This document shows positions 4,571 to 48,688 of a stretch of 64,000 bases of DNA, one piece after another. Below the pieces are notes generated by a model. It was not told the origin of the DNA. It did not search any database and saw only the letters and a program-made list of their open reading frames with translations. The stretch is from the IMG/VR virus record IMGVR_UViG_3300025030_000041, positions 62,001-126,000 of that record; one strand, written 5' to 3'. Each line of letters opens with the position of its first letter. Position 1 is the first letter of the stretch. Made by a program: the position numbers and the translations under genes.

Positions 4571-4714
4571 AATTAGTTGAAGATTATGACCGTTTATCGT
4601 TTAGTATATTAATTATCAATTAATTATATTTAATTGATATATTTAGTTCAAAAATAAAGTACCTAAAAAATTTAATATATCAAAAATATTTCTTATTTTT
4701 GTATTAAATATAAC
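4571..4714 (+). repeat. promoter cassette copy 1
   Basis: ttatcaattaattatattt...tttagttcaaaaataaagtac...ttcttATTTTTGtattaaatataac; matches the other copies. Confidence 0.85.
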
Positions 4715-4776
4715 ATGGGCATAAAAGAAATGCCGAAATTAGAAGTACAAATTATCAATTTAAAACAAAAGTAAAT

Positions 4777-5043
4777 ATGAAAAACAAAACATCAATTTTA
4801 GTAGGAGCTCGGCATTTCTTTTATGCCTTATTAGTAGCTGTTATTTTTTGCGGTTGTGGAAACGGTGAAAATTCAGTGAATGGAGAAATAGAATATAGAA
4901 CAATTGTTGTAGATAGCTGTGAGTATATTGTAAAGTATAATGGCTATCAAAGAGGGTATATGTTTTCTCACAAGGGAAATTGTAAATACTGCTACAAACG
5001 TACCCCCATTTTGGTTAGTTGCGTGAAAATATTACAAAATTAA
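4777..5043 (+). CDS. putative lipoprotein (cassette)
   Basis: Hydrophobic stretch followed by FCGC lipobox-like motif; starts inside a hairpin loop. Confidence 0.6.
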   Translation: MKNKTSILVGARHFFYALLVAVIFCGCGNGENSVNGEIEYRTIVVDSCEYIVKYNGYQRGYMFSHKGNCKYCYKRTPILVSCVKILQN

Positions 5044-5192
5044 ATTGAAACATGGATGATAAATTGGATTAAAAACTTATTTAAAAGCAGGGGAAAAACA
5101 ATTAACTAAACATGTTGTTATACACAGTATTTTGTTGGTGGGATTTGACAAATTAAAAATAAATTAGCATATTTACAAAAAAAATAAAAATT

Positions 5193-5504
5193 ATGAAAGA
5201 ATTATTTGAAAAACAATTAAACGGAACACAACCATTAACAAAAGATGTTTTAGAAAAATTACAAGTTAAAACATATTTTAATGGTGAAGAAAAACAAATT
5301 GGTGAAGTTGTATTAATGGCGATGTTAATGGGTGAAGTAATTGAAAAGGAAGGTGAATATCCAAAAGTACCATTAAAATTAATAACATTAAACGAAAGCC
5401 ATTTTAATTTATTTGAATATGATGAAAGATTTAATAGAGGTAATAAATTACCAACAATTAAATTGAAACCTTTAGTTGTGGTGGGTAAAAAATATTGCGT
5501 ATAA
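5193..5504 (+). CDS. hypothetical cassette protein
   Basis: ORF ending in TAA of TAAC. Confidence 0.65.
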   Translation: MKELFEKQLNGTQPLTKDVLEKLQVKTYFNGEEKQIGEVVLMAMLMGEVIEKEGEYPKVPLKLITLNESHFNLFEYDERFNRGNKLPTIKLKPLVVVGKKYCV

Positions 5505-5564
5505 CGTCCACAGGTATATATAGTTGCGTAAATAACATATAAAATTAATTAAAAGCGATAAAGT

Positions 5565-5798
5565 ATGAAAACAGATAAAAGTAAATTAGAAGAACAAAAG
5601 CAGCAATTGGATATACATGTTGTTAGCGGTAGTTTAACTCATATTCCTTTGTTTCAATATAATGTTGCTGTTGAATCACACGGGAATACATTAGAACTAT
5701 TGCGAATTATACAAAACGATAAAAAGGAATTAAAAGAAGAGTTAGAAGCAACATATAAAGAAATTGATAGGTTAAAGGCTAAACTAAATTACTGCTAA
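5565..5798 (+). CDS. hypothetical cassette protein, coiled coil
   Basis: QLDIHVVSGS is the translated recombination-site arm. Confidence 0.7.
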   Translation: MKTDKSKLEEQKQQLDIHVVSGSLTHIPLFQYNVAVESHGNTLELLRIIQNDKKELKEELEATYKEIDRLKAKLNYC

Positions 5799-5801
5799 TG
5801 G

Positions 5802-6065
5802 ATGAGTATAAATTTAGTAAAAATAATACAAATGAAGAATAAAGATAAACTTTGGAATTTTGTTTATGAACAAGAACCAAGACTAATGGGAGAACCATTT
5901 GGTAGATTTAACGTTAAAGTAGAAAAAGATTTTTTTATTATAGAATGTGAATTACTTACAAACTTGGAAAATCCATTTATAAATACAGAATTGAAAAAGT
6001 GTAAGGTTGATCAAAAATCTTTTACTAATTGGAAGAACAAACAAAATTCTATTATTTTTTATTGA
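5802..6065 (+). CDS. hypothetical protein encoded inside a hairpin unit
   Basis: ORF lies between and overlaps arms agtataaatttagtaaaa / ttttattgaatttatact; start may be the later Met. Confidence 0.65.
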   Translation: MSINLVKIIQMKNKDKLWNFVYEQEPRLMGEPFGRFNVKVEKDFFIIECELLTNLENPFINTELKKCKVDQKSFTNWKNKQNSIIFY

Positions 6066-6281
6066 ATTTATACTTTGTTATGTTTAACGAAGTATAGTTG
6101 TGAGAAGCGAACAATTAAACATAACGGTTGGGTGTATATGTAATGTGAGATTTGAAACACTAAACTTGAATTAACCACAAATGATGATTAGAAGTAGGAT
6201 TGTTGAATATACCACTGAACCTCACATTACATATACACCTTGTTATGTGTAGTACGGTGTTAAACTTAAATTTTAAAACTT

Positions 6282-6578
6282 ATGGATACAATAAAAATTA
6301 AATTAGAAAGTGGAAATGAATATAAATTACCAGACATTTCATCAGAAAAGTTTGATGAATATGTTTGGAAAAGTGGTAGTAATGACGTTGAATATGAGAA
6401 ATATAAACGTGAAAACGGAATGATGGAATTAACTGACTTTAATTCTCAAACGACTAGTGAAATCACATTAGTGGTAGAACAATCTTGGAGAGGTAGAGTT
6501 TTAAAATTTAAGTGTGTTTATGATTTTGATAACGATGAAAACTTTGATGAAAAGGAATATTTCGGAGAACATGAGTAG
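6282..6578 (+). CDS. hypothetical acidic cassette protein
   Basis: ORF inside GTTATGTGTAGTAC...GTATTACACATAA body. Confidence 0.7.
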   Translation: MDTIKIKLESGNEYKLPDISSEKFDEYVWKSGSNDVEYEKYKRENGMMELTDFNSQTTSEITLVVEQSWRGRVLKFKCVYDFDNDENFDEKEYFGEHE

Positions 6579-6587
6579 TATTACACA

Positions 6588-6697
6588 TAAATATTATATA
6601 TATATATATACATGTATGTTTAAACTATAATAAAATCAATAGTATGAACGAAAAAATTATAAAGATTTGTAAACAAAAACTTATATATTTAACGTAA
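6588..6697 (+). pseudogene. attI-like terminal site plus putative truncated integrase start (MNEKIIKICKQKLIYLT)
   Basis: Near-identical inverted copy at 46900-47002; same layout as the site upstream of the intact integrase. Confidence 0.55.
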
Positions 6698-10815: not shown

Positions 10816-12519
10816 ATGGCAATAGATTTAAACTTACTTAAAGATCATAATACTAGACAAGATTATATTAATACTTTAACTAAAGACGAACTTAAAGCAT
10901 TAATTAATAAACTCAAACTGCAAGATAGTGCATTTAAGATTATATTAAATAGCTATTATGGTTCATCAGGTCAAAATTCCTTCGCATTTTTCAATTTAGA
11001 CATAGCGGCGTCAATAACTTTGCAAGGTCAAGATATTATTAAGTATACGGATAAGGTAATAGAACATTATTTTATTAATGAGTGGCATCTTGATAAAGAG
11101 CTTCATAAAAAATTAAGTATAGATCATTTAAAAATTAATCCTATAAAAATAACAAAAGGGCCACCTATAATATATGTTGACACGGATAGCGTCAACGAAA
11201 ATTCAATAATTTATGTAAAAAATATAGGAAAAATTAAAATTAAAGATTTTTTTAAATTATGTTATAAAATTAATAGTATTATTAAATTAAAAAATGGGAA
11301 TGAGATAATTGGTATTTCTAATTTTAGAATATTAAATTTTAATAATACCTTATATTATGCAAAACCTAAAAAACTGATTAGGCATAAAGTAAAAAAGAAA
11401 AAATGGTTATTGAGGTCTAAGTCTGGAAAATCAATAATATGCACAGAAGATCATTCACTAATTGTATTTCACGATGGAATACAATTAAAAATTAAGCCAT
11501 CTGAAATTAATACAAAAATTGATAAAATTTTAACAATTAACGAATTAGACTTAAATTTTAATTATCAATTTGAAGATATATCTGAATGTAAATGTATAGG
11601 TGAATTCGAAGATGAGTGGGTATATGATATTGAAATGGATGATGCAACTCATACGTTTATTGCTAATGATATTTTAGTTCACAATTCTGGTTATATTAAT
11701 TATGATTATATTATAAAGTCGATAGAGGGGTTTGATACATTAAAAATAAGTCCTATATTATTTGCAGCTGATATAATTAAATATAGGATGAATTCTTATT
11801 TAAATAATAAATTTGAAGAATACGCTAAGTCGTATAATGCAATAAACACCCATGATTTTAAATTAGAGCATATTAGTAATAGTGGTATTTTTATTGCAAA
11901 AAAAAATTATATATTAGATGTTGCATTTGAGGATAGACTATTACCTGAGTCGTATTTATTACCTAAGGGGTTTGATTTAGTAAAAGCGTCTTTACCAAAA
12001 TGGGCACGGGCTAAAGGTACAGAATTAATTAAGATTATTTTAAAGAATGGCGACTCTTTAAATATGGATGAGATATTAAATAAATTATTAGAATATAAAG
12101 AAGAATTTAAAGGGCTACACCCTGATGAGTTTAGTATGAATTTTAATCTACGAACATTTAAAAAATATGTCATTAAAGATGACGATCAATTAGTATTTGC
12201 AAAAGGCGCATCTATCTATCCAAGGTCCGCTGGTTATTATAACCATTTATTATATAAGCAAACTGATAATATACGCAAAAAATATAAAAAGGTAAGAACC
12301 GGAGATAAGGTTAGATTTTATAATTGTATGCCTGATGATACGTATAAGATAGATGCATTTAGTTATTTACCTGGAAAATTTCCAATTGAGTTTGCGCCTC
12401 ACGTAGATTATGATGAGCAATTTAATGTTATTATTTTAAATCCATTGAATAGGGCTCTAGAAGCTATGGATATGCCATTAATAGAAAAAAATGTAATGTA
12501 TTTTAATGATTTGTTTTAA
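10816..12519 (+). CDS. family B DNA polymerase, C-terminal subunit (split gp43-like), intein-containing
   Basis: KIILNSYYG (motif B), YVDTD/S (motif C), KKNY, KG; no exonuclease or motif A. Confidence 0.9.
   Translation: MAIDLNLLKDHNTRQDYINTLTKDELKALINKLKLQDSAFKIILNSYYGSSGQNSFAFFNLDIAASITLQGQDIIKYTDKVIEHYFINEWHLDKELHKKLSIDHLKINPIKITKGPPIIYVDTDSVNENSIIYVKNIGKIKIKDFFKLCYKINSIIKLKNGNEIIGISNFRILNFNNTLYYAKPKKLIRHKVKKKKWLLRSKSGKSIICTEDHSLIVFHDGIQLKIKPSEINTKIDKILTINELDLNFNYQFEDISECKCIGEFEDEWVYDIEMDDATHTFIANDILVHNSGYINYDYIIKSIEGFDTLKISPILFAADIIKYRMNSYLNNKFEEYAKSYNAINTHDFKLEHISNSGIFIAKKNYILDVAFEDRLLPESYLLPKGFDLVKASLPKWARAKGTELIKIILKNGDSLNMDEILNKLLEYKEEFKGLHPDEFSMNFNLRTFKKYVIKDDDQLVFAKGASIYPRSAGYYNHLLYKQTDNIRKKYKKVRTGDKVRFYNCMPDDTYKIDAFSYLPGKFPIEFAPHVDYDEQFNVIILNPLNRALEAMDMPLIEKNVMYFNDLF
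11188..11685 (+). mobile_element. mini-intein (166 aa) in DNA polymerase motif C
   Basis: Starts at S after YVDTD, block B CTEDH, block F VYDIE, ends LVHN followed by S; no endonuclease domain. Confidence 0.9.
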
Positions 12520-12907
12520 ATATGAAGATATTAAAGATAAAGCCTTACTATCTAAATTAATAAAAGAAGAGGCTGATAGGATATTTAATTCTAGTATTGC
12601 AAGAAGGCATAGAAGTTATGACATAATATCCAATAATGTCAAATTAGGTAAAACGGCTGAAGTATGGTTATATGAAAATTTCAATTATAAATTTACAAAT
12701 GACATTTATACAGATTTACTAACAGATAGGGGCAATATAATAGAAGTAAAAGTAAAAAGAATTAAAAATCTTAATTGTTTAAATGACCAAATACAAAATG
12801 ACCTTGAAAAAATTAAAAGTTCAAATGTAAATAATTCAACAGTTTATATATGCTTCTCATATAATGACAATATATATAAATTAGAAAAAATAATAAAACT
12901 AACATGA
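12506..12907 (+). CDS. putative PD-(D/E)XK nuclease
   Basis: GKTAE...TDLL...IIEVK. Confidence 0.5.
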   Translation: MICFKYEDIKDKALLSKLIKEEADRIFNSSIARRHRSYDIISNNVKLGKTAEVWLYENFNYKFTNDIYTDLLTDRGNIIEVKVKRIKNLNCLNDQIQNDLEKIKSSNVNNSTVYICFSYNDNIYKLEKIIKLT

Positions 12908-13131
12908 TACAAGTTATTAAATATGCATGTTGTGATAAAATATTTGCAGCATGCCATGAACCTCACTGCTACACTGATACTGACTGGCTTAAAAACCTAA
13001 AACAATATGTTAGGCGAGGCGATAAAGTGGAAATGATACATGGTGGAAATGGACTCCAAATGGGTCAATGCGAGTGTAATGAATTAGTGAAAAGTAAAGA
13101 CCTAAACTTATTTAGTAAAGCAACACAATAA
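12904..13131 (+). CDS. hypothetical Cys-rich protein
   Basis: ORF overlapping the previous stop (ATGA). Confidence 0.6.
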   Translation: MIQVIKYACCDKIFAACHEPHCYTDTDWLKNLKQYVRRGDKVEMIHGGNGLQMGQCECNELVKSKDLNLFSKATQ

Positions 13132-13169
13132 AACTATTCAGTTTAGCCTCACCCATATATAATACACAA

Positions 13170-13301
13170 AGAGTATTATATTTATCATTTAGTAGATTGA
13201 TTATCAATTAATTATATTTACTTGTTATATTTAGTTCAAAAATAAAGTACTAAAAATGTTAATATATCAAAAACATTTCTTATTTTTGTATTAAATATAA
13301 C
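13170..13301 (+). repeat. promoter cassette copy 2
   Basis: agtagattgattatcaattaattatatttacttGTTAtatttagttcaaaaataa...ttatttttgtattaaataTAAC. Confidence 0.9.
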
Positions 13302-13344
13302 AGTTTGCAGGTTTATTTAGTTGCGACTTTAAAAACGAAAAATT

Positions 13345-13515
13345 ATGATAACAGAAAAACAATACTTAAAAGCGAAAAAGTTAATTGCAGACTACGAAAG
13401 CCAGCAATTGAATAAACATGTTGTTATAAGCAGTAAGCCGACCTCAAAAAAGAAGAAGGTGATTATAGATGCAGATAAATTTTCAAAGATGTGTGATGTT
13501 ATTAAACGGATATAG
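13345..13515 (+). CDS. hypothetical cassette peptide, 56 aa (not in ORF track)
   Basis: MITEKQYLKAKKLIADYESQQLNKHVVISS... Confidence 0.65.
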   Translation: MITEKQYLKAKKLIADYESQQLNKHVVISSKPTSKKKKVIIDADKFSKMCDVIKRI

Positions 13516-13587
13516 GCTTATTGCTGCTAACGTTCATCAGATATATTCAGTTCTGATTTTAATATATAACTAAAATAAATTAATAAG

Positions 13588-13845
13588 ATGAAAGATAGAA
13601 AACATATAAAAACATTTGAAGATAAGACATCAGAATTGAATATATCTGATGTTATAAGTAGTAAAACTAAGGAAGAAATTCTAAAATTGATAAAAAGTTT
13701 AGATGATAGAGGGTATTTTTATATTTTCAATAATAGAGAGGATTTTGTAGAGGGTAGAACAGATTGGGATGATTTAAAAGATACTTGTGAAAACTTTTAT
13801 TATGTTATTGAAAATATAAAAGAATTAATAGAAAGAAATGAGTAG
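13588..13845 (+). CDS. hypothetical cassette protein with KHIKTFED leader
   Basis: ELNISDVISS is the translated site. Confidence 0.7.
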   Translation: MKDRKHIKTFEDKTSELNISDVISSKTKEEILKLIKSLDDRGYFYIFNNREDFVEGRTDWDDLKDTCENFYYVIENIKELIERNE

Positions 13846-13925
13846 TTTTATTACTTATAACGTGCCGCAGCTTGACGCTGTTGGCGATTTGAAACACGAA
13901 TTTTAATTAAACAACAAAAGTAAAT

Positions 13926-14270
13926 ATGGAAACGAAAACTTCAATTAACAACGAAACCGCCAATAGCGTTCAAGGTACTGTTAGGCGTAGGGCGGACATC
14001 AATCAGGAGATTGCCGAAAAATGGGAATTAATCGCTCAAATCAAAACAGAAATAGTTGCCTTGAAAAAAGAGGAACTTCTATTGTGTGATGACCACCAAA
14101 GATTTGAGGAAACGGAAGAAGAAATAACAATTTCAAGGCGACCAAAGAAAACCGAAAAGCGATTAATTGGGCGTATTCATTGGAAGGAAGAATTTAAGGA
14201 TGAAGATACAGAGCAATCTATTTGGATTGAGCGTTCACAGGTTGTTCGCGTCAATGGTGTGTGGCAGTAG
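13926..14270 (+). CDS. hypothetical cassette protein
   Basis: ORF; more GC-rich than the backbone. Confidence 0.75.
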   Translation: METKTSINNETANSVQGTVRRRADINQEIAEKWELIAQIKTEIVALKKEELLLCDDHQRFEETEEEITISRRPKKTEKRLIGRIHWKEEFKDEDTEQSIWIERSQVVRVNGVWQ

Positions 14271-14382
14271 CCTTACGCCTAACGTTTTGCGTATATGTGA
14301 AGTACGCATAGCAGAAACTTGAAATTAAATACAAACCTTAATGGCGTATTTCACATATACGCTGTTAGCAAATCGTAAAATT

Positions 14383-14559
14383 ATGACTAAGAAAGATATT
14401 TTAAAATTAGTAGAAGAAACATTCAGCGAAGAAATTTCAACTTCTTGTGCTGAAACTGTATTAGGACTTGAAAGTTGGATTGATGGTAAAGAAGAATTTA
14501 TGGAAAAGTTAGCAGAGAAGTTGAAATTGTTATTTGATGATAACGACTTATCTAAATAA
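14383..14559 (+). CDS. hypothetical cassette protein
   Basis: Start at 14383 or 14341. Confidence 0.6.
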   Translation: MTKKDILKLVEETFSEEISTSCAETVLGLESWIDGKEEFMEKLAEKLKLLFDDNDLSK

Positions 14560-14571
14560 TTTTATGTTTGC

Positions 14572-14731
14572 TAACGTTCTGTAAATATGATTAGTTGAAG
14601 AGTACTGTCATTTATAATTTAGTAGATTGATTATCAATTAATTATATTTACTTATTATATTTAGTTCAAAAATAAAGTACTAAACGTGTTAATATATCAA
14701 AAATATTTCTTATTTTTGTATTAAATATAAC
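14572..14731 (+). repeat. complete promoter-only cassette (copy 3)
   Basis: TAAC-gttct-GTAAATATGATTAGTTGA...TCAATTAATTATATTTAC-tt-ATTA-body-TAAC; no ORF. Confidence 0.9.
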
Positions 14732-14757
14732 GGCTACAGATAAACTCAGTTTTTATT

Positions 14758-14979
14758 ATGGAAAAGAAAATATATTACGAAAACAATTGGTTAAATCAGC
14801 ACTTAAATAAAGTTGGATTGCTCGATAAAAAATTGAGTTTATCTGATGTTATGTGTTGTGTTTGTGGGTCGGAACTCACAATTCAAGAGAATGAAGAAAA
14901 TCTAACTTATGATGTTAGAGAACGAATATGTGATAAATGTAATAGTGAGTTGAGCGAGGAAAGAAAACATTGCATATAA
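14758..14979 (+). CDS. hypothetical zinc-ribbon cassette protein
   Basis: CCVC...CDKC; stop is part of TAAC. Confidence 0.7.
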   Translation: MEKKIYYENNWLNQHLNKVGLLDKKLSLSDVMCCVCGSELTIQENEENLTYDVRERICDKCNSELSEERKHCI

Positions 14980-14997
14980 CGGCATCCGCTATGAGTA

Positions 14998-15291
14998 GTG
15001 GCGGATTTAGAACTACTCACTTTAAATTTAGCACAAATGACAATAGAAAGCACAGAACATCAAGAAAGCACTAACCCGCCATTACTTATATCGAGTGTTA
15101 GCGGTAGTGTTTTTCGTCCGAAGAATGGACACGAATTACTGCAAGCATTGAAAGAAAATAAACAATGTGAGATAGTAGATACACACGCATTTTTAGCAAC
15201 AAAAGCACTTGAAGACAACCATTGCGGATTTTCATTTTCTTTCAAGCTGTCAAAGTGGAATAAAGGATGGTCAGGTTTCGAGTGGTCTTAA
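14998..15291 (+). CDS. hypothetical cassette protein (integrase-proximal)
   Basis: LLISSVSGS translated site; start may be ATG 15037. Confidence 0.65.
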   Translation: MADLELLTLNLAQMTIESTEHQESTNPPLLISSVSGSVFRPKNGHELLQALKENKQCEIVDTHAFLATKALEDNHCGFSFSFKLSKWNKGWSGFEWS

Positions 15292-15300
15292 CATTACCGC

Positions 15301-15320
15301 TAACTATTATATATATACAA
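15301..15320 (+). other. attI-like terminal recombination site (TAAC-TAT-(TA)5)
   Basis: Last TAAC has no partner hairpin and lies 37 bp before the integrase ATG. Confidence 0.6.
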
Positions 15321-15340
15321 GTACGCTTAATATATTGAAT

Positions 15341-16156
15341 ATGAATACTAAATTTGATTGTATTATCAGAAAATTTGAAAAAACTCTGATAATAAAAAAT
15401 TATTCAACATGTACTATTAATAATTATAAAAGTTGTCTTTATAACTTTTTAATAGAAATAAACAATGATCCATACCATTTAAATTTAGAACAGTTAAACA
15501 ACTATTTATTTAATTTTAATTATTCGTCAGTATCACAGCAAAATCAAATACTTAATTCTTTAAAAATATTCTATTTATTAATTTTAAAAAAATCAATAAA
15601 ACATTTAATTAAAATTAAAAGACCACGAAGAGAAAAGAAATTACCACAAGTAATTTCGCATGATGAAATTGTGCAATCAATTTCCAAAATACAAAACTTA
15701 AAACATAAAGCTATCATATCGCTAGCATATAGTAGTGGATTAAGAGTTTCAGAAATATGTAATCTTAAATTAGAAGACATAGATTCAAAAAGAATGCTAA
15801 TTTTAGTTAAATCAGGAAAAGGAAGAAAAGATAGAGTTGTACCTCTTTCAAATCATATTTTAGGGCTTTTAAGAAAATACTATCTTAAATACAAACCTGA
15901 GTTTTATCTTTTTGAAAGCTATGCTCATGGAGTTAAATATTCTACTTCAAGTTGTAGGCAAATTTGGAATAATTTTAAAATTAATAAAAATTCAACTTTT
16001 CATACATTGAGGCATTCATGCTTTACAAATCTTTTAGAAAATGGAACGGACATACGAATAATTCAAAAAATAGCAGGGCATTCATCAATAAAAACTACAG
16101 AAATTTATACTCACATATCAACTAATATCTTAAATAAGATTAAATTACCAATTTAA
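15341..16156 (+). CDS. tyrosine recombinase / integrase (271 aa)
   Basis: SGLRVSE (R), GKGRKDR (K), HTLRH, GHSSIKTTEIY; N-terminal SAM-like domain; the track start 15209 overlaps a cassette, so 15341 is preferred. Confidence 0.95.
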   Translation: MNTKFDCIIRKFEKTLIIKNYSTCTINNYKSCLYNFLIEINNDPYHLNLEQLNNYLFNFNYSSVSQQNQILNSLKIFYLLILKKSIKHLIKIKRPRREKKLPQVISHDEIVQSISKIQNLKHKAIISLAYSSGLRVSEICNLKLEDIDSKRMLILVKSGKGRKDRVVPLSNHILGLLRKYYLKYKPEFYLFESYAHGVKYSTSSCRQIWNNFKINKNSTFHTLRHSCFTNLLENGTDIRIIQKIAGHSSIKTTEIYTHISTNILNKIKLPI

Positions 16157-16224: not shown

Positions 16225-16965
16225 ATGCTTACACAAGATAATATTAAATCAGTATTACTTTTTGATTTAGAAACATGTGGTCAATCTAAGGAGTTATTTG
16301 GATTACCTCCTCTTTTACAAGATATATTTATACGTAGAACTTGGCAAAAAATTAAAGAAGAGTATAAAGATGAAAACGAAGGGTATTTAAAAAATGCCGG
16401 CTTATATGCTGAATATGGTAAAATAATATGTGCGTCGTTTGCCATGATTAAGTTTGATGAAAATATTAGTAGTATTAGTCTAATTAATATAGCAGATGAA
16501 AATGAAAAGATTCTTTTAGAAAAAGTGAGTAAATTATTAAATGACTTTTCATCTATTTTTAAAAATGGTAAATTATGTGGGTATAATATTAAAAATTTTG
16601 ATATACCATTTTTATCAAAACGATTTTTAATTAATAGATTAGATTTACCAAATTTATTAGATAACTATAACAAAAAGCCATGGGAAATATCATGTTATGA
16701 TTTATTTGAAATGTGGTCATTTGGCCAAAAAAAATTAATACCATTTGAATTAGTATTAGCGTCACTAAATATTGATACCCCTAAAGATGATATTCATGGC
16801 CATGAAGTCCATGAAACATATTATTCATCAGACAATAAAATAAATTCTCTTAATAAAATATCAAAGTATTGTGGAAAAGATGTTATAGCATCTTGCCAAT
16901 TATTATTACGTTTAAATAATATCGATGTAGTTAATAAAGATAATATTATTAGTAAAACAATTTAG
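16225..16965 (+). CDS. PolB-type 3'-5' exonuclease (DnaQ-like)
   Basis: FDLET, GYNIKNFDIPF, YCGKDV. Confidence 0.85.
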   Translation: MLTQDNIKSVLLFDLETCGQSKELFGLPPLLQDIFIRRTWQKIKEEYKDENEGYLKNAGLYAEYGKIICASFAMIKFDENISSISLINIADENEKILLEKVSKLLNDFSSIFKNGKLCGYNIKNFDIPFLSKRFLINRLDLPNLLDNYNKKPWEISCYDLFEMWSFGQKKLIPFELVLASLNIDTPKDDIHGHEVHETYYSSDNKINSLNKISKYCGKDVIASCQLLLRLNNIDVVNKDNIISKTI

Positions 16966-27199: not shown

Positions 27200-27721
27200 T
27201 TAAACATAAACTTTTCCTTTTACATCAATTACTTTTCTTACTTCTCTTACTGTAAATTTTTTAGTATTATTCTCAATATTAAAGTATTCTCCTACCGCTG
27301 TAGGAGCTCCTTCAAGACTAGTTAAATAATTATCAGAACAATCAAAATCACCACCTACTATTTTTGGACTTCCTTCTAAACTAGTTAAATTATTATTATA
27401 ATAACAACAACCAAAAAAACCAGTTACTTCTTCTAGGTTTAGCTCTTTCAAATTATTTATTTCTTTTAGTCTAACATTACCAATTATAACTTTAATATTC
27501 TTAAAGTCTTGTATATTATTTTTAGTTATAATAATCGTTTTATCGAAGGGTTTAGCTACGAATATTTGTTCTTTGGTATAACCTTTATTGAGGTAAGGAA
27601 GTAATAAATCATCCCACCGTTCTTTAAGTCGTCTAGGTATAAATATATCTTTAGCACTAAGCTTAGACTTATTAGATTCTTCTTCAGATATAAATTGTTC
27701 AAATAGCTTTATATGCTTCAT
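27200..27721 (-). CDS. LRR-like (LTSLEG) paralog with MKHIKLFEQF leader
   Basis: 22-aa repeats; paralog family. Confidence 0.85.
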   Translation of the reverse strand: MKHIKLFEQFISEEESNKSKLSAKDIFIPRRLKERWDDLLLPYLNKGYTKEQIFVAKPFDKTIIITKNNIQDFKNIKVIIGNVRLKEINNLKELNLEEVTGFFGCCYYNNNLTSLEGSPKIVGGDFDCSDNYLTSLEGAPTAVGEYFNIENNTKKFTVREVRKVIDVKGKVYV

Positions 27722-27724
27722 TAT

Positions 27725-28348
27725 TTAAAATAGCATTTTATAAGTTTCTACAAAATTTATAGTAGAGCTAAATGATGGTTTGATTTTTTGAATTATATTA
27801 GAGTCTGGTTCTAAATCTTTGCCATTAATTCTAAAAGAAGTAGTAGTAGGTTTAGCGTTACTGATTATAGTAATATCTTCTTTTAGATCAGCTTCAAATA
27901 TAAAATCGTCATAATTATACTCAGTAACTATTTTAAGACGTAATTCTAAAGTTGGTAATACTCTTAATATATCACCAATTAATTCCATTTTTGAATATTT
28001 TTCCTTTGGTATGCCTAAGTCATCAAAAAATTCAGTTTCTTCAGTTTTTATTATAAAGTCAAGAGGAATTAACATTAAGTCATTATAATTAATAGTAGGT
28101 TCATTAATTGATAATAAACCTATTTTTGCTCCTTTTATTTCTTTATTAACTCCAGATTTTATATCAAATGTAGAATAATAATATTTCTCTTCAATATGAT
28201 TAATTTTACCTCCTAAAACCTTAAGCTTTTTAATACACGCCGTAGTAGTTGAAAAATTTATTTTAATATCTTCTTCAGAATGCTGCTTAATTTCATTAAT
28301 CTTATAATTATTCTTTATTTTATATTCACAGAAATTATCAAATATCAT
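27725..28348 (-). CDS. hypothetical protein
   Basis: ORF. Confidence 0.7.
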   Translation of the reverse strand: MIFDNFCEYKIKNNYKINEIKQHSEEDIKINFSTTTACIKKLKVLGGKINHIEEKYYYSTFDIKSGVNKEIKGAKIGLLSINEPTINYNDLMLIPLDFIIKTEETEFFDDLGIPKEKYSKMELIGDILRVLPTLELRLKIVTEYNYDDFIFEADLKEDITIISNAKPTTTSFRINGKDLEPDSNIIQKIKPSFSSTINFVETYKMLF

Positions 28349-28365
28349 TTTCGTGTATTTTATTT

Positions 28366-29001
28366 TTAAACATAAACTTTTCCCTTTACATCAACTACTT
28401 TTCTTACTTCTTCTTCTATAAATTTTTTAGTATTATTCTCAATATTAAAATATTCTCCTACCGTGGTAGGAGCTCCTTCAAGACTAGTTAAATTATTATT
28501 AGAACAACTAAAATAGCCGTTTACCGTGGTAGGAGCTCCTTCAAGACTAGTTAACTTATTATTATAACAATAAAAATTTCCACTTACTATAGTAGGAGCC
28601 CCTTTAAGACTAGTTAACTTATTATAAGAACAATCAAAAAATCCACTTACTATAGTAGGAGCCCCTTTAAGACTAGTTAACTTATTATAAGAACAATCAA
28701 AATATCCAACTACTTCTTCTATACCTAATACTCTCAAATCATTTATTCCACTTATTCCAACATTACCTATTATTACTTTAATATTCTTAAAATCTTCTAT
28801 ATTATCTATAGTTATAATAATCGTTTTATCAATTGGTTTAGCAATAAATATTTGTTCTTTGGTATAGCCTTTATTTAGGTAAGGAAGTAACAGGTCATCC
28901 CAACGTTCTTTAAGTCTTCTAGGTATAAATATATCTTTAGTGCTAAGCTTAGGAGTTTCTTCTTCAGATATAAATTGTTCAAACAGTTTTATATGTTTCA
29001 T
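28366..29001 (-). CDS. LRR-like paralog with 4 repeats
   Basis: 66-nt near-identical tandem repeats at about 28450-28710. Confidence 0.85.
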   Translation of the reverse strand: MKHIKLFEQFISEEETPKLSTKDIFIPRRLKERWDDLLLPYLNKGYTKEQIFIAKPIDKTIIITIDNIEDFKNIKVIIGNVGISGINDLRVLGIEEVVGYFDCSYNKLTSLKGAPTIVSGFFDCSYNKLTSLKGAPTIVSGNFYCYNNKLTSLEGAPTTVNGYFSCSNNNLTSLEGAPTTVGEYFNIENNTKKFIEEEVRKVVDVKGKVYV

Positions 29002-29363
29002 TATTCTTCAGTTTTAGGTTCAATTTCAGTAGAAGTTTCTTCTGGTTTAATGTCTTCGCTAGGGGTTTCTAATAATTTTTTTTCTAGGTATTCTTTTTGA
29101 GTTTCATAGAATTGTTTAATAGTCGGCCAAGTTAGTGTTACTTCTTTATATAATTCTTCCATTTTTGGTCTAATACTTTTAATATCTGAATTATCATTTA
29201 ATAATACATCTAGTAGAACTGTACGAAATTTAGTTAAACCATTATATGCAGTATCAAAATCTTTTTCATCTAATGTTAGAGATTCTGGATCTTTTTTAAT
29301 ATCAGTAGCCTCATTAAGAATTCCATTTTTAAATTCTTCGTAAAGTTTAAATTTTTTATTCAT
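29001..29363 (-). CDS. hypothetical protein (KLYEEF leader)
   Basis: ORF. Confidence 0.7.
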   Translation of the reverse strand: MNKKFKLYEEFKNGILNEATDIKKDPESLTLDEKDFDTAYNGLTKFRTVLLDVLLNDNSDIKSIRPKMEELYKEVTLTWPTIKQFYETQKEYLEKKLLETPSEDIKPEETSTEIEPKTEE

Positions 29364-29392
29364 GATAAAGTATTTTATTTTTATTTATTTAT

Positions 29393-29944
29393 TTAATCTA
29401 TTGCAACTTTTAAATTAAAATCAAAATAATTAAATGTTGCATCAAATGTATTAAAAGTTGGAGTATTACTGCTATATGATAATTTTAGGCTTGACATTCC
29501 TTTTAATATAACTTTATTATATTCAATTTGGCTAATCGCTTTACCTTCACTATTTAACATTAATACTATAAATGGTGGAAAAACATCAAGCTCAGTATTA
29601 TTAAAATCTAAATAATTTAATGCATTTTCAAGCATAATGAAATAATTTAAAAAAGCGTCCGTTAATTTAAAAGTTAATGTAAATTCTCTAGTAAATAAGT
29701 CTTGAATAGGTTTACTATTTTTCATTTCACGAGTCTTTCCTAATAGTAAAGTTTGAGAAGATGTTGTCATTGACCATCCTGGAAAATCAATTTGTTGTAC
29801 TGTACTTGACATAAAATCAGATATTGTATCATAAGGTAATATTAAACTCTTATAATAATCTTTATATTTATTTTCAATTTCAGAATTAAAAAATTCTTTT
29901 GGAAATTGAAATACAAAACTACTTTGTCTATTATTTAATATCAT
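29393..29944 (-). CDS. putative tail tube-like / virion protein
   Basis: QQIDFPGWS...FTLTFKL...LSYSS...FDATFNY pattern; structural context. Confidence 0.5.
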   Translation of the reverse strand: MILNNRQSSFVFQFPKEFFNSEIENKYKDYYKSLILPYDTISDFMSSTVQQIDFPGWSMTTSSQTLLLGKTREMKNSKPIQDLFTREFTLTFKLTDAFLNYFIMLENALNYLDFNNTELDVFPPFIVLMLNSEGKAISQIEYNKVILKGMSSLKLSYSSNTPTFNTFDATFNYFDFNLKVAID

Positions 29945-29947
29945 TTA

Positions 29948-30484
29948 TTAAAATGTTAAAATTGAAACTATATTATTTTTAATAGTTTGTGTTAAATACG
30001 ATTTATCAATAGACGAAATTGAATCTAATAATGGCTGTTTATATCCGTCTTTATATAATTCAATATACGATTTTACAGTATTTAATAAGTCGAATGCATT
30101 AGATTGTCCAACTGTATTTAATACATATATTTTTGCCTCATCAATAACATTCTCTCTACGAATAATACCTTCATTTATAGATTCTTGAGGAGAATAATAT
30201 TTTATATTAGTTTTAGTATATCCAATATTTCCATTTTCTAAATACCAATCTGAAACTAAAGTTCTATATAAAACTAATCCTAATGAATTTCTAGTATAAA
30301 TTCTAGTTTCTCTAACTATTAAATCTGAATAATCAATCCCATTATAATATTTATAATATTCAATGATAGATAATTCCCCTTTTATAATAGTCCGTTTTTT
30401 ATGAAACCCCATAATATCATAATCGAATAACTCCGGCGAATCATACTTACTATGTATTTTAAATTTAGAACTAATTACAGTCAT
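29948..30484 (-). CDS. hypothetical protein
   Basis: ORF. Confidence 0.7.
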   Translation of the reverse strand: MTVISSKFKIHSKYDSPELFDYDIMGFHKKRTIIKGELSIIEYYKYYNGIDYSDLIVRETRIYTRNSLGLVLYRTLVSDWYLENGNIGYTKTNIKYYSPQESINEGIIRRENVIDEAKIYVLNTVGQSNAFDLLNTVKSYIELYKDGYKQPLLDSISSIDKSYLTQTIKNNIVSILTF

Positions 30485-30500
30485 TTACTTATATATTTTT

Positions 30501-31010
30501 TTAAATAATAACTTCATCTTTTACATCAACTATTTCTCTAACTTCTTCTTCTGTAAATTCTTTGTCATTACCACTAATCCAAAAATCATTTTTAACTATC
30601 ATAGGTGCTCCATTTAAATTAGTTAAATAATTATCAGAACAATCAAAATCACCACCTACTATTTTTGGGCTTCCTTCTAAACTAGTTAGCTTATTTAAAT
30701 AACATTTGAAATTTCCGAATACTTCTTCTATATTTAGCTCTCTTAAATCACTTATTCCTTTTATTCTAACATTACCTATTATAACTTTAATACTTTTAAA
30801 GTCTCCTATATTATCTTTAGTTATAAGCATATCTTTATTAAAAGGTTTAGCAATGAATATTTGTTCTTTAGTATAGCCTTTATTGAGGTAAGGAAGTAAT
30901 AAGTCATCCCACCTTTCTTTTAGTCTTCTAGGTATAAATATATCTTTAGCTCTAATTTTAGGTTTATCTTCCTCAGATATAAACTGTTCAAATAGTTTAA
31001 TAGGTTGCAT
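30501..31010 (-). CDS. LRR-like paralog
   Basis: MQPIKLFEQF...DIFIPRRLKERWDD; LTSLEG repeats. Confidence 0.85.
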   Translation of the reverse strand: MQPIKLFEQFISEEDKPKIRAKDIFIPRRLKERWDDLLLPYLNKGYTKEQIFIAKPFNKDMLITKDNIGDFKSIKVIIGNVRIKGISDLRELNIEEVFGNFKCYLNKLTSLEGSPKIVGGDFDCSDNYLTNLNGAPMIVKNDFWISGNDKEFTEEEVREIVDVKDEVII

Positions 31011-31011
31011 T

Positions 31012-32691
31012 TTATAAGTTTTTAGGTCTTGATATTATTTGTTTTATTTGTATATTTACAGAAGATAGATTATTGTCCGAAATTCCAGTATCAAATTCTA
31101 TATTATTTCTTGTAGAGAATCCTCCTCTAATTAGAGGTAATTCATTTTCTTCTATAATAATATCATTAAATTCGTCTAAACCTATATCAGTTATTGTACT
31201 TAATGTTAGATCTTTATTAATATATTGTAATTCATTCTTTTCACTTATAATATTTATATTAACACTATCTACATCATTAATATTTTCTATTAATTTAATT
31301 AGGTCAGACCGTGGAATCCGGTCTCTTCTCTTGCTATTAATAAAGTATTCTGCAATTTCCTTTAATATTTCATTTTTAATTTGCGGAGGCCCTCCTAATG
31401 CGTCATCATAAATAATAACTGATACATTTATTACATATCTGCTAACTATAGGATCAAGTATTTTAATATCACTTCCAATTAGTTTTGTACCAGATTTTTC
31501 TATATACTCTAATAATTTAGATTTTTGAAATTTGTTTAATGAAAAGCGTTCAACTGGGGTAGAGTAATAATCTTCACTTTTAGAAAATGTTTTTGTAATA
31601 TTGGGTATTACAAAAAGATTAATTAATCTATCATTTTCAGGATCTAAAAATACTCTTATAATAGAAAAGAAATTCATTTTTCTAAGTAATATTTCATAGT
31701 TATCTGCATTTACTAGAGCGAAATTTTTGCTAGCTTTAGGAGCAATTAACCTAGTTAATGCTATAGGTTCAGGGTTAGCCCCAAACGTAGGAGGAGTTTT
31801 AACATTAATTGAAAAAACTTCATTTAAGTCTATTTCATTTCCAAATTGGTCAAATCCAGTATCTATAAATGTAAAAAATAGTCCCTTTGGATTTTGGGTT
31901 ATATCAATATTTCCAGATCCACCCTCATTAACTAAATACTCAACCCTAATATCACTTCCTAGTGTAGGGATAGCCCCAAAATTTCCATTACCAAAAAATA
32001 GGTCTATTCCACTAGTCATACCTGTTTTAATTATATAAGTATTTGCATTTCTAGGCATATCATAAAAACTGTCATACTTATCCCATTTTTCGCCATTTAT
32101 ATAAACGTCTACATTAAATTGATCTACAAAAAAGTTCTTTGAATATTGGACAGCATAACTCTGTAATTGCTGTCCAGTTCCAGTAAATATTTGGGTTTCT
32201 ATAAATCCCTGCTTTATAGTCATACTTTTACCATTATCTAGACCTGTTGTAGATACTTTTATTTCGTCAGTTGGAAATTCAAGTATATATGTTAAATTAT
32301 TGTTTTGGCATTGCAATTTAGTATATTTAGGTATAATAACTATATTATTAGCAACTTGAGTTATAAAATCAGATTTAATATATAATGATATTTCGCCGCT
32401 CGCTGAAATAGACCTAGTAGGTGAATGCCCCGCTAAACTAGCTAATGAATAGATACTAGTTTCTCTAGACGCCTGAAAAATGTTTAATTCAGTAATACTA
32501 TCAGATATATAATATAAAGCCAGCTGCATTAAATTTTCTGATACAAATATAATTTGACCAAATGGAGAAGCCACTGTGAAAATATTGCGTGACTGATTAA
32601 ATTTATCTACTAAATAATCAACTGTGTCACGTAATAATTCAAATGTCTTTAACCGATGTAATCTAAATATCTTAAGTTCTGTAGTAGCCAT
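31012..32691 (-). CDS. baseplate wedge subunit (T4 gp6-like)
   Basis: SIYSLASLAGH, LFFGNGNFGAIP, VEYLVNEG, GANPE, LVNADNYE. Confidence 0.8.
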   Translation of the reverse strand: MATTELKIFRLHRLKTFELLRDTVDYLVDKFNQSRNIFTVASPFGQIIFVSENLMQLALYYISDSITELNIFQASRETSIYSLASLAGHSPTRSISASGEISLYIKSDFITQVANNIVIIPKYTKLQCQNNNLTYILEFPTDEIKVSTTGLDNGKSMTIKQGFIETQIFTGTGQQLQSYAVQYSKNFFVDQFNVDVYINGEKWDKYDSFYDMPRNANTYIIKTGMTSGIDLFFGNGNFGAIPTLGSDIRVEYLVNEGGSGNIDITQNPKGLFFTFIDTGFDQFGNEIDLNEVFSINVKTPPTFGANPEPIALTRLIAPKASKNFALVNADNYEILLRKMNFFSIIRVFLDPENDRLINLFVIPNITKTFSKSEDYYSTPVERFSLNKFQKSKLLEYIEKSGTKLIGSDIKILDPIVSRYVINVSVIIYDDALGGPPQIKNEILKEIAEYFINSKRRDRIPRSDLIKLIENINDVDSVNINIISEKNELQYINKDLTLSTITDIGLDEFNDIIIEENELPLIRGGFSTRNNIEFDTGISDNNLSSVNIQIKQIISRPKNL

Positions 32692-32706
32692 TAATATTAT
32701 TTATTT

Positions 32707-33285
32707 TCAAACTGTAACTTCACCTTTTACATCAATCACTTCTCTTACTTTTTCTGTAAATTTCCTTGTATTATTATTAATATAAAAATTTCCATTAACT
32801 ATTTTAGGAGCTCCTTTAAGATTAGTTAGTTTATTATTATAACAATGAAAACTACCATTCACTATAGTAGGGCCTTCTTCTAGACTAGTTAGTTCATTAT
32901 TAGAACAAAAGAAATTACCATTCACTATAGCAGGACCTCCTTTAAGACTAGTTAGTCTATTATAAGAACACTTAAAATATCCATTTACTTCTTCTATACC
33001 TAACTCCCTCAAATCAGTTATTCCAATTATTCTAATTATTCTAACATTACCAATTATAACTTTAATATTCTTAAAATCTTCCATATTATCTTTAGTTATA
33101 AGTAGCTCACTATCAATTGGTTTAACTATAAATATTTGGTCTTTGGTATACCCTTTATTAAGGTAATGGATAAGTAAGTCATCCCATCTTTCTTTAAGCC
33201 TCCTAGGTATAAATATATCTTTAGCACTAAGTTTAGGAGTTTCTTCCTCAAATATAAATTCTTCAAATAATTTAATATGCTTCAT
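32707..33285 (-). CDS. LRR-like paralog
   Basis: MKHIKLFEEF; 3 repeats. Confidence 0.85.
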   Translation of the reverse strand: MKHIKLFEEFIFEEETPKLSAKDIFIPRRLKERWDDLLIHYLNKGYTKDQIFIVKPIDSELLITKDNMEDFKNIKVIIGNVRIIRIIGITDLRELGIEEVNGYFKCSYNRLTSLKGGPAIVNGNFFCSNNELTSLEEGPTIVNGSFHCYNNKLTNLKGAPKIVNGNFYINNNTRKFTEKVREVIDVKGEVTV

Positions 33286-33311
33286 TATTTTTATTTATTT
33301 TTATTTAAAAT

Positions 33312-33338
33312 AAAAAAGGCTGATGTAAATCAGCCTTT
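33312..33338 (-). terminator. intrinsic terminator
   Basis: aaaggctgat/atcagccttt hairpin with A run on + strand. Confidence 0.7.
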
Positions 33339-33361
33339 ATATAAACAAAAATAGTTTTTTG

Positions 33362-33961
33362 TTAAACGTAAACTTCTCCTTTTACATCAATCACTTCTCT
33401 TACTTCTTCTTCTGTAAATTGCTTTGCATTATTATCAATATAAAAGTTTCCTTTAACTATTTTAGGAGCTCCTTCGAGGCTAGTTAATTCATTATAAGAA
33501 CAATTAAAATATCCATTTATTTTAGTAGGACACCCCTTTAGACTAGTTAAATTATTTGAAAAACAATAGTAACCTCCAGTAACAACTGGACCATTTTCTA
33601 AACTAGTTAATCTATTATTAGAACAATCAAACTCTCCATTAACACGTTTTATATGACCATCAAAACTACTTATATTATTAGTATTACAAGAATAACCTCC
33701 TGTTATTTTTGGACTACCCTTTAAACTTGTTAAGTTATTATCAAAACAACTAAAAGTACCAATTATGCGTTCAATACCTAATTCTTCTAAATTAGATATA
33801 CCCTGTACTGCAACATGGGCAGTTATAACATCTGTATTTTTATACTTATTAATATTTTTTTTAGTAATAACGATATGTTCTTTTGTATCTGGTCTATACG
33901 AACTTGGATAACTTATAGAGTCATTAACAAAGTCTTCAAATAATTTTACATATTTTTCCAT
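33362..33961 (-). CDS. divergent LRR-like paralog
   Basis: MEKYVKLFEDF; about 5 repeats; same C-cap. Confidence 0.85.
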   Translation of the reverse strand: MEKYVKLFEDFVNDSISYPSSYRPDTKEHIVITKKNINKYKNTDVITAHVAVQGISNLEELGIERIIGTFSCFDNNLTSLKGSPKITGGYSCNTNNISSFDGHIKRVNGEFDCSNNRLTSLENGPVVTGGYYCFSNNLTSLKGCPTKINGYFNCSYNELTSLEGAPKIVKGNFYIDNNAKQFTEEEVREVIDVKGEVYV

Positions 33962-48364: not shown

Positions 48365-48526
48365 ATTTTTAATCGTTTAATTATTTCCTTTCCTAAAAAT
48401 GTTTTATTTTTTCTTCTGCTCCGAATGAATTGTAGTGGAAGCTCCTGCTGCTAACAAAGGATATAAGAAAGTAATTTTTTCTTGTCTATTTTTAATGGTA
48501 AAAAATTCCATTCTCATATCCTCATC

Positions 48527-48643
48527 GTTATATTTAATACAAAAATAATAAAAAGTTTTGATATATTATAGAGCTTAGTACTTTATTTTTGTATTAAATA
48601 TAACGAGTAAATATAATTAATTGATAATCAATCTACTAAATTA
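48527..48643 (-). repeat. promoter cassette copy 4 (perfect 22-bp terminal IR)
   Basis: gttatatttaatacaaaaataa / ttatttttgtattaaatataac. Confidence 0.9.
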
Positions 48644-48688
48644 TTAAATTTATTGAGTATATAGTTTTAAATAAATAAATAACATAAT

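Follow-up and report, generated by a model that had tools for sequence, protein, structure and literature searches.

In integrons, a tyrosine recombinase (IntI) lies beside an attI site and an array of promoterless cassettes, whose attC sites are imperfect hairpins conserved in structure rather than sequence, with ...AAC/GTT... cores. The cassette ORFs lie on the strand opposite the folding strand, are followed by their attC, and are transcribed away from attI by Pc. A second system, the rAID-1 (recombinase-associated acquired interbacterial defense) arrays of Bacteroidales, has a XerD-like recombinase of about 270 aa beside an array of short genes separated by repetitive intergenic sequences that the authors called "reminiscent of integrons" (Ross et al. 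2019, bioRxiv 10.1101/471110; 10.1101/2025.05.03.651265). These papers describe neither hairpins nor a mechanism, and state that rAID biogenesis is unresolved.

In T4-type phages, small variable early genes are flanked by PeSL (promoter-early stem-loop) motifs, which have no dedicated recombinase and are thought to act through homologous recombination (PMC2839356, PMC4122927). Canonical attC clusters (CALINs) have been found with IntegronFinder in virulent phage genomes, including a Polaribacter (Flavobacteriia) phage, and are recombined by bacterial IntI1, but had no phage-encoded recombinase of the family studied here, no reversed gene polarity and no translated sites (Qi et al. 2023, PMC9892861).

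Here, we analyzed a 64,000-nt stretch (the window; positions 62,001 to 126,000 of IMG/VR record IMGVR_UViG_3300025030_000041) of a giant phage, which carries an integron-like array of small genes next to its own recombinase gene. A sequence-only reading had proposed that the genes point toward the integrase, start inside the hairpin loop and translate part of a dual-coding recombination site. Our comparative analysis supports both the recombination sites and the reversed polarity. To our knowledge, this apparent gene-shuffling device has not been described in viruses.

Results

Organization of the array

Positions 13298-15304 hold seven units, each bounded by TAAC and each beginning with an imperfect hairpin (TAAC-G...T-GTTA) of about 88 or 125 nt. 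All point toward a tyrosine recombinase gene (15341-16156, +), and all cargo ORFs lie on the + strand, upstream of and co-directional with it. To locate the sites, we first built a covariance model of the short sites (R1). As this model alone missed the long sites, a second model (R2) was built.

The upstream edge of the array is a promoter-like repeat (13169-13301, +), a partial copy of a unit that we named D7, which ends in TAAC. More than 15 copies occur in the genome at 87-96% identity, most of them ending in AAATATAAC and followed by a site. The repeat contains TATTTTTG, which matches the Bacteroidota -7 box TAnnTTTG, and its promoter role is inferred.

Site 1 (13298-13426, 129 nt, R2 84.3 bits) opens cassette 1 (13302-13531), whose ORF 13345-13515 starts in the loop. 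The same 237-nt unit occurs at 99% identity in the two other arrays of the genome with different neighbors, bounded by TAAC on both sides. Site 2 (13528-13654, 127 nt, R2 66.2 bits) opens cassette 2 (13532-13861), whose ORF 13588-13845 also starts in the loop. Its 23-nt arms are 96% complementary, with a G.T as the single mismatch, and the ends of the unit (13651-13669 and 13843-13861) are 95% complementary to each other. Site 3 (13858-13983, 126 nt, R2 95.8 bits) opens cassette 3 (13862-14283), with ORF 13926-14270 starting in the loop. Site 4 (14280-14367) belongs to the 88-nt short class, scores 85.9 bits with R1 on the + strand against 31 on the - strand, and has a DNA fold z-score of -4.6. 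The ORF of its cassette (14284-14575) most likely starts at 14383, after GTTA.

The next unit (14576-14731) has no ORF. It consists of a short hairpin (14572-14654, weak, R1 32.8 bits) plus the D7 promoter-like repeat, with TAAC on both sides, and has three full copies in the genome at 95-99% identity, each flanked by TAAC and by different neighbors. Site 6 (14728-14851, 124 nt, R2 67.1 bits) opens cassette 6 (14732-14980), whose ORF 14758-14979 starts in the loop and stops at the TAA of the next TAAC. Site 7 (14977-15100, 124 nt, R2 89.8 bits) opens cassette 7 (14981-15304), with ORF 15037-15291 starting in the loop. Thus, in five of the seven units the ORF starts in the loop and reads through the right arm and GTTA.

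The last TAAC is followed by TATTATATATA (15301-15340), 37 nt before the recombinase ATG. TAAC followed by TAT(T/A)ATATATA is conserved 35-55 nt upstream of the ATG in nearly all related phage loci, and we refer to this junction as attI-like.

Sites were also found elsewhere in the window. A second array (4592-6612, +), without a recombinase, has a promoter repeat (4592-4713), sites at 4711-4833, 4996-5120 (weak), 5502-5625 and 6122-6245, ORFs 4777-5043, 5193-5504, 5565-5798, 5802-6065 and 6282-6578, and an attI-like relic with TAAA in place of TAAC at about 6586-6612. An isolated site lies at 1427-1551 (+, R2 63.7 bits), and its TAA closes ORF 1142-1429. A single unit on the minus strand (48452-48647) consists of a site (48452-48530, R1 46.4 bits and R2 38.6 bits, both on the minus strand), a promoter repeat (48527-48647) and ORF 47846-48364.

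The sites are translated

The peptides proposed to arise from translation of the right arm are all present: QLNKHVVISS (13345-13515), ELNISDVISS (13588-13845), NSVQGTVRRR (13926-14270), LSLSDVMCC (14758-14979), LLISSVSGS (15037-15291), QLDIHVVSGS (5565-5798) and QLNISEVSHN (1142-1429). However, ORF 1142-1429 carries only a right-arm remnant with no matching left arm. In the window, 7 of the 12 + strand sites have an ATG in the loop that opens the cassette ORF. In the wider family this holds for 62% of the ~125-nt sites and 8% of the ~88-nt sites, and GTT of GTTA is read as a codon in 57 of 76 cases. In the long sites, the loop carries the start codon and about 15 codons, while the right arm, GTTA and the conserved AGT that follows are read as ...L-x-x-x-x-V-x-x-S.

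The TAA of TAAC is the stop at 1429, 5504 and 14979. Family-wide, it is the stop at 46 of 239 sites (19%), against 4% for all TAAC in the genome, and a second peak of stops lies 12 nt upstream of TAAC. The TAAT variant proposed at 5798 was not confirmed, as the model search found no site there.

In the loop part of one leader family, substitutions by codon position are 37/66/119, biased to the third position. The same leader is fused to unrelated bodies, with 0 of 28 and 0 of 15 body pairs being similar. ORF 4777-5043 has a lipoprotein-type signal peptide whose residues 11-17 are encoded by the right arm. The further suggestion that the hairpin sequesters the translation start is not supported, since the ATG sits in a large open loop.

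Conservation of the fold and linkage to the recombinase

To test whether the hairpins could arise by chance, we examined stem covariation. We found compensatory changes in 18 of 20 and 16 of 18 stem pairs, and 95.6% of cells are paired, against 58.9% in shuffles and 37-48% when the pairing is slid. TAAC and GTTA are invariant, and one G.T pair is kept in 50/51 and 55/56 sequences. Stem mismatches are 371 G.T-type on the + strand against 43 A.C-type, and orientation is fixed, with TAAC-G in 217/225 sites and T-GTTA in 220/225. DNA folding energies did not separate the two strands, and three of six sites in the window are not significantly more stable than shuffles. Our choice of folding strand rests on the G.T statistics instead.

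The layout recurs upstream of about 70 related phage recombinases. In 80 phage loci, 320 sites lie upstream and 17 downstream of the recombinase gene, the sites are 24 times denser upstream than downstream, and 183 of 183 model hits are on the recombinase strand. ORFs lie on the folding strand in 142 of 164 cassettes and point toward the recombinase. In this genome, all three arrays lie upstream of a recombinase gene or a fragment of one.

Units are exchanged at TAAC

We next asked where the boundaries of the mobile units lie. Each unit's start after GTTA is complementary to its own end before the next TAAC at 8.87 of 14 positions, against 4.81 for same-site flanks and 4.78 for random pairs. 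Shared units begin and end exactly at TAAC, and the inner arms always travel with the downstream body. A crossover at GTTA, which would split each ORF between two cassettes, was rejected because shared units are bounded by TAAC.

The MITEKQ cassette and the promoter cassette occur at 99% identity in different contexts, although the two recombinase paralogues are only 52% identical. Among the phage loci compared (designated L), the pairs L064/L065 (99.8%), L015/L016 (100%) and L081/L082 are alike only from the attI-like TAAC onward, while L050 and L067 carry the same cassette blocks in a different order, with breakpoints at TAAC. L004 proved to be the same phage and was uninformative. In addition, a recombinase gene fragment is truncated at ...GATAAC. 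Assembled contigs from public runs gave no clear circular or deletion joints; the joints seen had short sides and probably reflect the repeats, and low-depth samples lack some cassettes, which does not show absence. Taken together, sequence comparison points to site-specific recombination just after TAAC.

The recombinase and the cargo

The 271-aa recombinase matches Pfam PF00589 at 131.6 bits, as well as PF13495. It aligns end to end with archaeal XerA structures, and we read conserved catalytic motifs by eye in these alignments, including the R, HxxR, H and Y positions. Against VchIntIA (2a3v), query residues 179-204 span chain residues 179-250, so about 46 residues are missing, corresponding to the integron-specific insertion. 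The protein scores below the cut-offs of all NCBIfam models, including TIGR02249 (170.7 bits in two stretches, against a cut-off of 265). It is Xer/XerA-like, and not an integron integrase in the strict sense.

The genome is T4-like, with a Gp23-type capsid protein and a prohead protease. DNA similarity to isolated phages gave only a 103-nt stretch, and no isolated phage in the collection searched has a close homologue of the recombinase, the best being 36% identical. Searches of ten cassette proteins from the window against Pfam and PHROGs gave nothing significant except an unnamed PHROG for the lipoprotein (ORF 4777-5043), the match starting at residue 14. Related phage cassettes include methylases, Tad6, an RNA ligase and ADP-ribosyltransferases.

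Chromosomal homologues in Bacteroidota

As a genus-level search aimed at B. fragilis rAID-1 reached a five-genome genus, we used an order-level sample, in which 55 of 151 genomes have a homologue, and four loci. The chromosomal recombinases are 41-48% identical to that of the window, and the phage recombinases form a separate clade (SH-aLRT 100). The phage site model hits the chromosomal sites at up to 99.5 bits, and in 64 of 64 model hits the sites lie antisense to the genes, with the ORFs between the sites. The flank test gave a similar outcome, with 9.24/14 for a unit's own ends against 4.73 for same-site flanks. These arrays lie downstream of the recombinase and are co-directional with it, and they match the published rAID-1 architecture, although the assignment rests on architecture only. 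These results indicate that the fold is a DNA feature and that the phage gene polarity is truly reversed.

Discussion

We consider it likely that the locus is a phage-encoded cassette platform that works like an integron, built from a different branch of the Xer/IntI recombinase group and with its genes inverted relative to the sites. Each mobile unit runs from just after one TAAC to the next, and its 5' part is a site that folds on the + strand into a 20-25-bp stem carrying the nearly invariant G.T pair, with a 4-5-nt bulge on one strand (consensus GGTTG) next to TAAC and a loop of 10-75 nt. In the excised circle, the unit's own two ends would extend this stem by another 15-19 bp. By analogy with integrons, we infer that a folded single strand is the substrate, that the neighboring recombinase would cut the + strand at or next to TAAC and exchange it with the attI-like junction or another site, and that the product is resolved by replication; this would insert, excise and reorder cassettes. 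Because the genes lie on the folding strand, the long sites double as the 5' end of the gene. Transcription runs toward the recombinase and appears to be supplied by the promoter-only cassettes.

Some observations weigh against this model, for which recombination has not been shown experimentally. The recombinase lacks the IntI domain that integron integrases use to read folded sites, so how it would recognize a hairpin is unclear. Within an array, the outer part of the stem is formed from two different cassettes and is mismatched, and the substrate for excision would therefore be weaker than the one for integration. Homologous recombination between the 70-85% similar sites could also add to the shuffling.

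Like integrons, the locus has a recombinase of the Xer/IntI group beside promoterless cassettes, hairpin sites with AAC/GTT cores, a crossover at the core so that each cassette's first bases pair with its own far end, an attI-like site adjoining the recombinase gene, and one strand that appears to be favored for folding. Relative to site polarity, the recombinase gene is divergent, as in canonical integrons. It differs in the missing IntI insertion, in genes that point toward the recombinase and translate the site, in an outer stem of 15-19 bp rather than 7 bp, in a G.T pair and one-sided bulge that may take the place of extrahelical bases, in promoters that travel as cassettes with no fixed Pc, and in its viral host. 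The nearest described system is rAID-1 rather than a canonical integron, but in the phage the array lies upstream of the recombinase, the sites are on the sense strand and translated, and the cargo is not immunity genes.

Alternatively, cassettes may be shuffled only by homologous recombination between similar repeats, as proposed for PeSL motifs, without a site-specific enzyme. The T4-like nature of the phage, the 70-85% similarity of the sites across phages, and the resemblance of the promoter cassette to a PeSL agree with this. However, it seems unlikely, because breakpoints fall at one position right after TAAC and not anywhere within the 125-nt homology, the inner arms always travel with the downstream body, the arms covary, which homologous recombination does not require, and the arrays sit next to a recombinase gene with a conserved attI-like junction.

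It is still less likely that the hairpins are RNA elements of the phage mRNAs, such as 5' leaders controlling stability, processing or translation, with the neighboring recombinase unrelated to them. In phages the foldable strand is the transcribed sense strand, the conserved non-Watson-Crick pairs are G.U-compatible and the start codon sits in the loop, and mRNA folding very likely happens as a side effect. However, the homologous chromosomal sites lie antisense to the genes, so the fold there cannot be in the mRNA, and an RNA role does not explain the complementarity between a unit's two ends, the exact TAAC junctions or the attI-like motif. A search of 12800-15500 against Rfam at E up to 1 gave no match. 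Finally, that the recombinase is a lysogeny integrase or a dimer-resolution (Xer/Cre-like) enzyme beside a hypervariable region is very unlikely: although it is a small Xer-like protein and large phages often carry such enzymes for other purposes, this genome has two copies plus a fragment, each directly downstream of an array, the linkage holds in about 70 phage loci with fixed site orientation, the bacterial cousins show the mirror arrangement, and cassette differences between near-identical phages abut the gene at a conserved motif.

A broader reading, about as likely as not, is that large T4-like phages of Bacteroidota run their own integron analogue that does not depend on IntI, in which the folded sense-strand sites would serve at once as recombination substrate, translation-start module and portable N-terminal leader peptide. 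The phages would use the arrays as a shuffled bank of small host-takeover and counter-defense genes, a role that is inferred, mirroring bacterial integrons and rAID arrays, which bank defense and immunity genes. It is much less likely that the leaders themselves have a function, for example in routing the proteins into the capsid through the T4-type prohead protease pathway.

A recombination site that tolerates being translated is unusual in itself, and could be useful as a compact genetic part. The sites are easy to find, so they flag hundreds of small phage genes as recently exchanged accessory cargo; the few recognizable ones are anti-restriction methylases, a Thoeris inhibitor, an RNA ligase and ADP-ribosyltransferases, which gives a direct route to new counter-defense proteins. 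The system would also supply the missing site anatomy for the unexplained rAID arrays of gut and environmental Bacteroidota. It would place an active cassette-capture system inside viruses, and would show that hairpin-site cassette recombination is not confined to IntI enzymes.

Genomic context of the cassette array

The window covers bases 62001-126000 of a 246-kb virus record, about 25% G+C and 92% complete by CheckV, which was found in groundwater metagenomes. It encodes a T4-type major capsid protein and a prohead protease, as well as a family-B DNA polymerase, a sigma factor and a flap nuclease. The family-B DNA polymerase appears to be split, with a polymerase-domain ORF carrying an intein-splicing-domain match (10816-12519, within 10816-13131) upstream of the cassette array and recombinase, and a separate 3'-5' exonuclease-domain ORF (16225-16965) downstream of them. 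On the minus strand, a run of about nine paralogous genes of 170-210 aa, plus one of 559 aa, was noticed at 27200-33961; these genes share 63-nt (21-residue) tandem repeats with a weak leucine-rich-repeat match. According to a TAnnTTTG-type -7 box in a repeated promoter-like sequence and the taxa that hold the nearest cellular homologues, we inferred that the host is probably a member of Bacteroidota.

Between 13298 and 15304 there are seven consecutive units on the + strand, each ending in TAAC, and they are followed 37 nt later by a 271-aa tyrosine recombinase gene at 15341-16156. Six units begin with an imperfect inverted repeat, TAAC-G...T-GTTA, of 124-129 nt, one of them being 88 nt, and one unit holds only a short hairpin and a promoter-like repeat. 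In five units an ATG in the loop opens the ORF, which then reads through the right arm and GTTA. The sequence-only reading had listed seven peptides produced by such read-through and three stops at the TAA of TAAC, and all of these were verified. Two of its details failed: no site was found at the TAAT of 5798, which had been taken as a variant of TAAC, and the ORF at 1142 keeps only a right-arm remnant.

The promoter-like repeat is about 120 nt long, contains the TAnnTTTG-type box and occurs 17 or more times, at 13169-13301, 14610-14731, 4592-4713 and 48527-48647 (minus strand) of the window and in at least 12 more places in the genome. Copies that precede a cassette end in TAAC, copies elsewhere do not, and three copies are complete TAAC-bounded promoter cassettes.

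Conservation and covariation of the hairpin sites

To test whether the hairpins are more than chance, we scanned 80 IMG/VR loci that encode relatives of the recombinase (50-64% identity). This gave 320 such hairpins upstream of the gene and 17 downstream, or 0.94 against 0.04 per kb. Site lengths cluster at about 88 and 125 nt, and a minimal 48-nt class also exists (TAAC, a 10-11-bp stem, an 11-nt loop, GTTA), which sits at cassette boundaries in two phage loci, L050 (111-158, 736-783 and 1553-1600) and L067 (583-630 and 1539-1586). This shows that the long loop is dispensable for the presumed recombination role. Orientation is fixed relative to the recombinase gene, with G following TAAC in 217 of 225 sites and T preceding GTTA in 220 of 225.

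Alignments of 51 short and 56 long sites show strong covariation, with compensatory changes in 18 of 20 and 16 of 18 stem pairs, respectively. We found 95.6% of cells paired, against 58.9% after shuffling and 37-48% with the pairing slid. One G.T pair in mid-stem is kept in 50/51 and 55/56 sequences, while its neighbours covary. Overall, stem mismatches are 371 G.T-type on the + strand against 43 of the A.C type, indicating that one strand, the + strand, is selected to fold.

Position of the presumed crossover

Three lines of evidence from sequence comparison place a recombination crossover at or next to TAAC, although no recombination event was observed directly and the cleaved bond, the single-strand substrate and the role of the neighbouring enzyme are inferred. 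First, the 14 nt after a site's GTTA are complementary to the 14 nt before the next TAAC at 8.87 of 14 positions, but not to the flank on the other side of the same site (4.81, against 4.78 for random pairs). This is the signature known from integron cassettes, where the two halves of the outer stem lie at the two ends of one cassette.

Second, sequence shared between arrays or phages starts and ends at TAAC, not at GTTA. Within this genome, a 237-nt cassette (13298-13532) recurs at 99% identity in two other arrays with different neighbours, and one of those copies lies directly against the attI-like sequence of the second recombinase gene, whereas the two recombinases are only 52% identical.

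Third, near-identical phages differ exactly there. The phage loci L064 and L065 are 99.8% identical over 6.8 kb, starting at the TAAC before the recombinase gene, and are unrelated upstream of it; the pairs L015/L016 (100%) and L081/L082 behave the same way. L050 and L067 carry cassette blocks that are 99.9-100% identical but in a different order, and one cassette end (...GTGTATAAC) is followed by the attI-like sequence in L050 and by another cassette's site in L067.

That attI-like sequence, TAAC followed directly by TAT(T/A)ATATATA, is conserved 35-55 nt upstream of the start codon in nearly all phage loci. Further, a 5' fragment of a third recombinase gene in this genome (161196-161245) is truncated at ...GATAAC. 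A second cassette array at 4592-6612 of the window has no recombinase gene and ends in an attI-like relic in which TAAC has become TAAA (about 6586-6612), as if the recombinase gene had been lost.

The recombinase and its chromosomal homologues

The protein aligns end to end with archaeal XerA structures and, compared with the Vibrio integron integrase, lacks about 46 residues at the position of the IntI-specific domain. It scores below the cut-offs of the XerA, IntI, XerC and XerD models. It is therefore a Xer/IntI-group recombinase, but not an integron integrase in the strict sense.

Chromosomes of many Bacteroidota encode recombinases 41-48% identical to that of the window. The genera include Flavobacterium, Chitinophaga, Algoriphagus and Pseudopedobacter, plus members of the order containing the Bacteroides-labelled MAG L101 (presumed Bacteroidales), in which 55 of 151 sampled genomes have the recombinase. 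Downstream of these genes, which encode Xer-like proteins of about 269 aa, the site model built from phage sequences finds 64 sites, all on the strand opposite the recombinase gene and scoring up to 99.5 bits. Arrays of such sites of about 126 nt lie, for example, in the chromosomal loci L163, L119, L143, L118, L092, L193 and L194, at locus coordinates above 7100 or downstream of the recombinase gene. There the genes lie between the sites, starting 12-50 nt after GTTA and ending shortly before TAAC, on the strand that does not carry the G.T pairs.

This architecture matches the rAID-1 arrays of Bacteroidales, whose repetitive intergenic sequences were called reminiscent of integrons (10.1101/471110) and whose biogenesis is still listed as unresolved in a 2025 paper (10.1101/2025.05.03.651265). 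The site anatomy, with TAAC/GTTA cores, an invariant G.T pair and the crossover logic, does not appear in the papers read.

Two consequences follow. The conserved fold cannot be an mRNA feature in bacteria, so it acts as DNA. Moreover, relative to site polarity, phage genes really are inverted, as the sequence-only reading had proposed: phage sites lie on the sense strand in 183 of 183 model hits, and 142 of 164 cassettes have their longest frame on that strand. Phage recombinases form one clade, separate from the chromosomal ones, with SH-aLRT 100. The recombinases of L084 and L085, contigs of a 'Gammaproteobacteria' MAG and a Flavobacterium MAG, nest inside the phage clade next to this genome's second paralogue, and L084 has a phage-type upstream site, so these contigs are probably phage sequence binned into bacterial MAGs.

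Full-text searches found canonical attC clusters in phages (PMC9892861), rAID-1 in bacteria and PeSL motifs in T4-type phages (PMC2839356, PMC4122927), but, with subscription-only literature not included, no description of a phage-encoded array with this recombinase, this polarity or translated sites. IntegronFinder surveys report almost no integrons in Bacteroidetes.

Translation of the sites

Among long sites, 62% have a loop ATG whose frame continues at least 25 codons past GTTA, while among short sites 8% do. GTT is a codon in 57 of 76 cases. The pseudo-motif shared by unrelated proteins has a simple source: L comes from the conserved ATTG of the right arm, V from the GTT of GTTA, and S from the conserved AGT of the outer stem.

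Leader families such as MKDxKHIKxFNE..NLNISDV recur in different phages, fused to bodies with no detectable similarity (0 of 28 and 0 of 15 pairs). In the unpaired loop part of one leader family, substitutions concentrate at third codon positions (37/66/119), which argues that the leaders are translated. ORF 4777-5043 is a lipoprotein-type precursor whose signal peptide is partly encoded by the right arm. The sequence-only reading had also suggested that the hairpin may sequester the translation start, but the start codon lies in a large open loop, so this is not supported. A modest effect of the stem on early elongation remains possible.

Cassette cargo

The cassette proteins of the window are orphans. 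We next examined the 80 largest cassette proteins of related phages (cassette ORFs of the phage loci L005-L080), of which 71 have no Pfam match. The nine with matches are three N6/N4 DNA methylases, an MT-A70 methylase, a Tad6-type Thoeris inhibitor (E 4.6e-41), an RNA ligase with a PHA02142 OB domain (840-1904 of phage locus L049), two ADP-ribosyltransferase-type proteins and an Rv2179c-like exoribonuclease; the DNA methylases are orphan enzymes. Although for this window it is an inference, this fits a bank of host-takeover and counter-defence genes.
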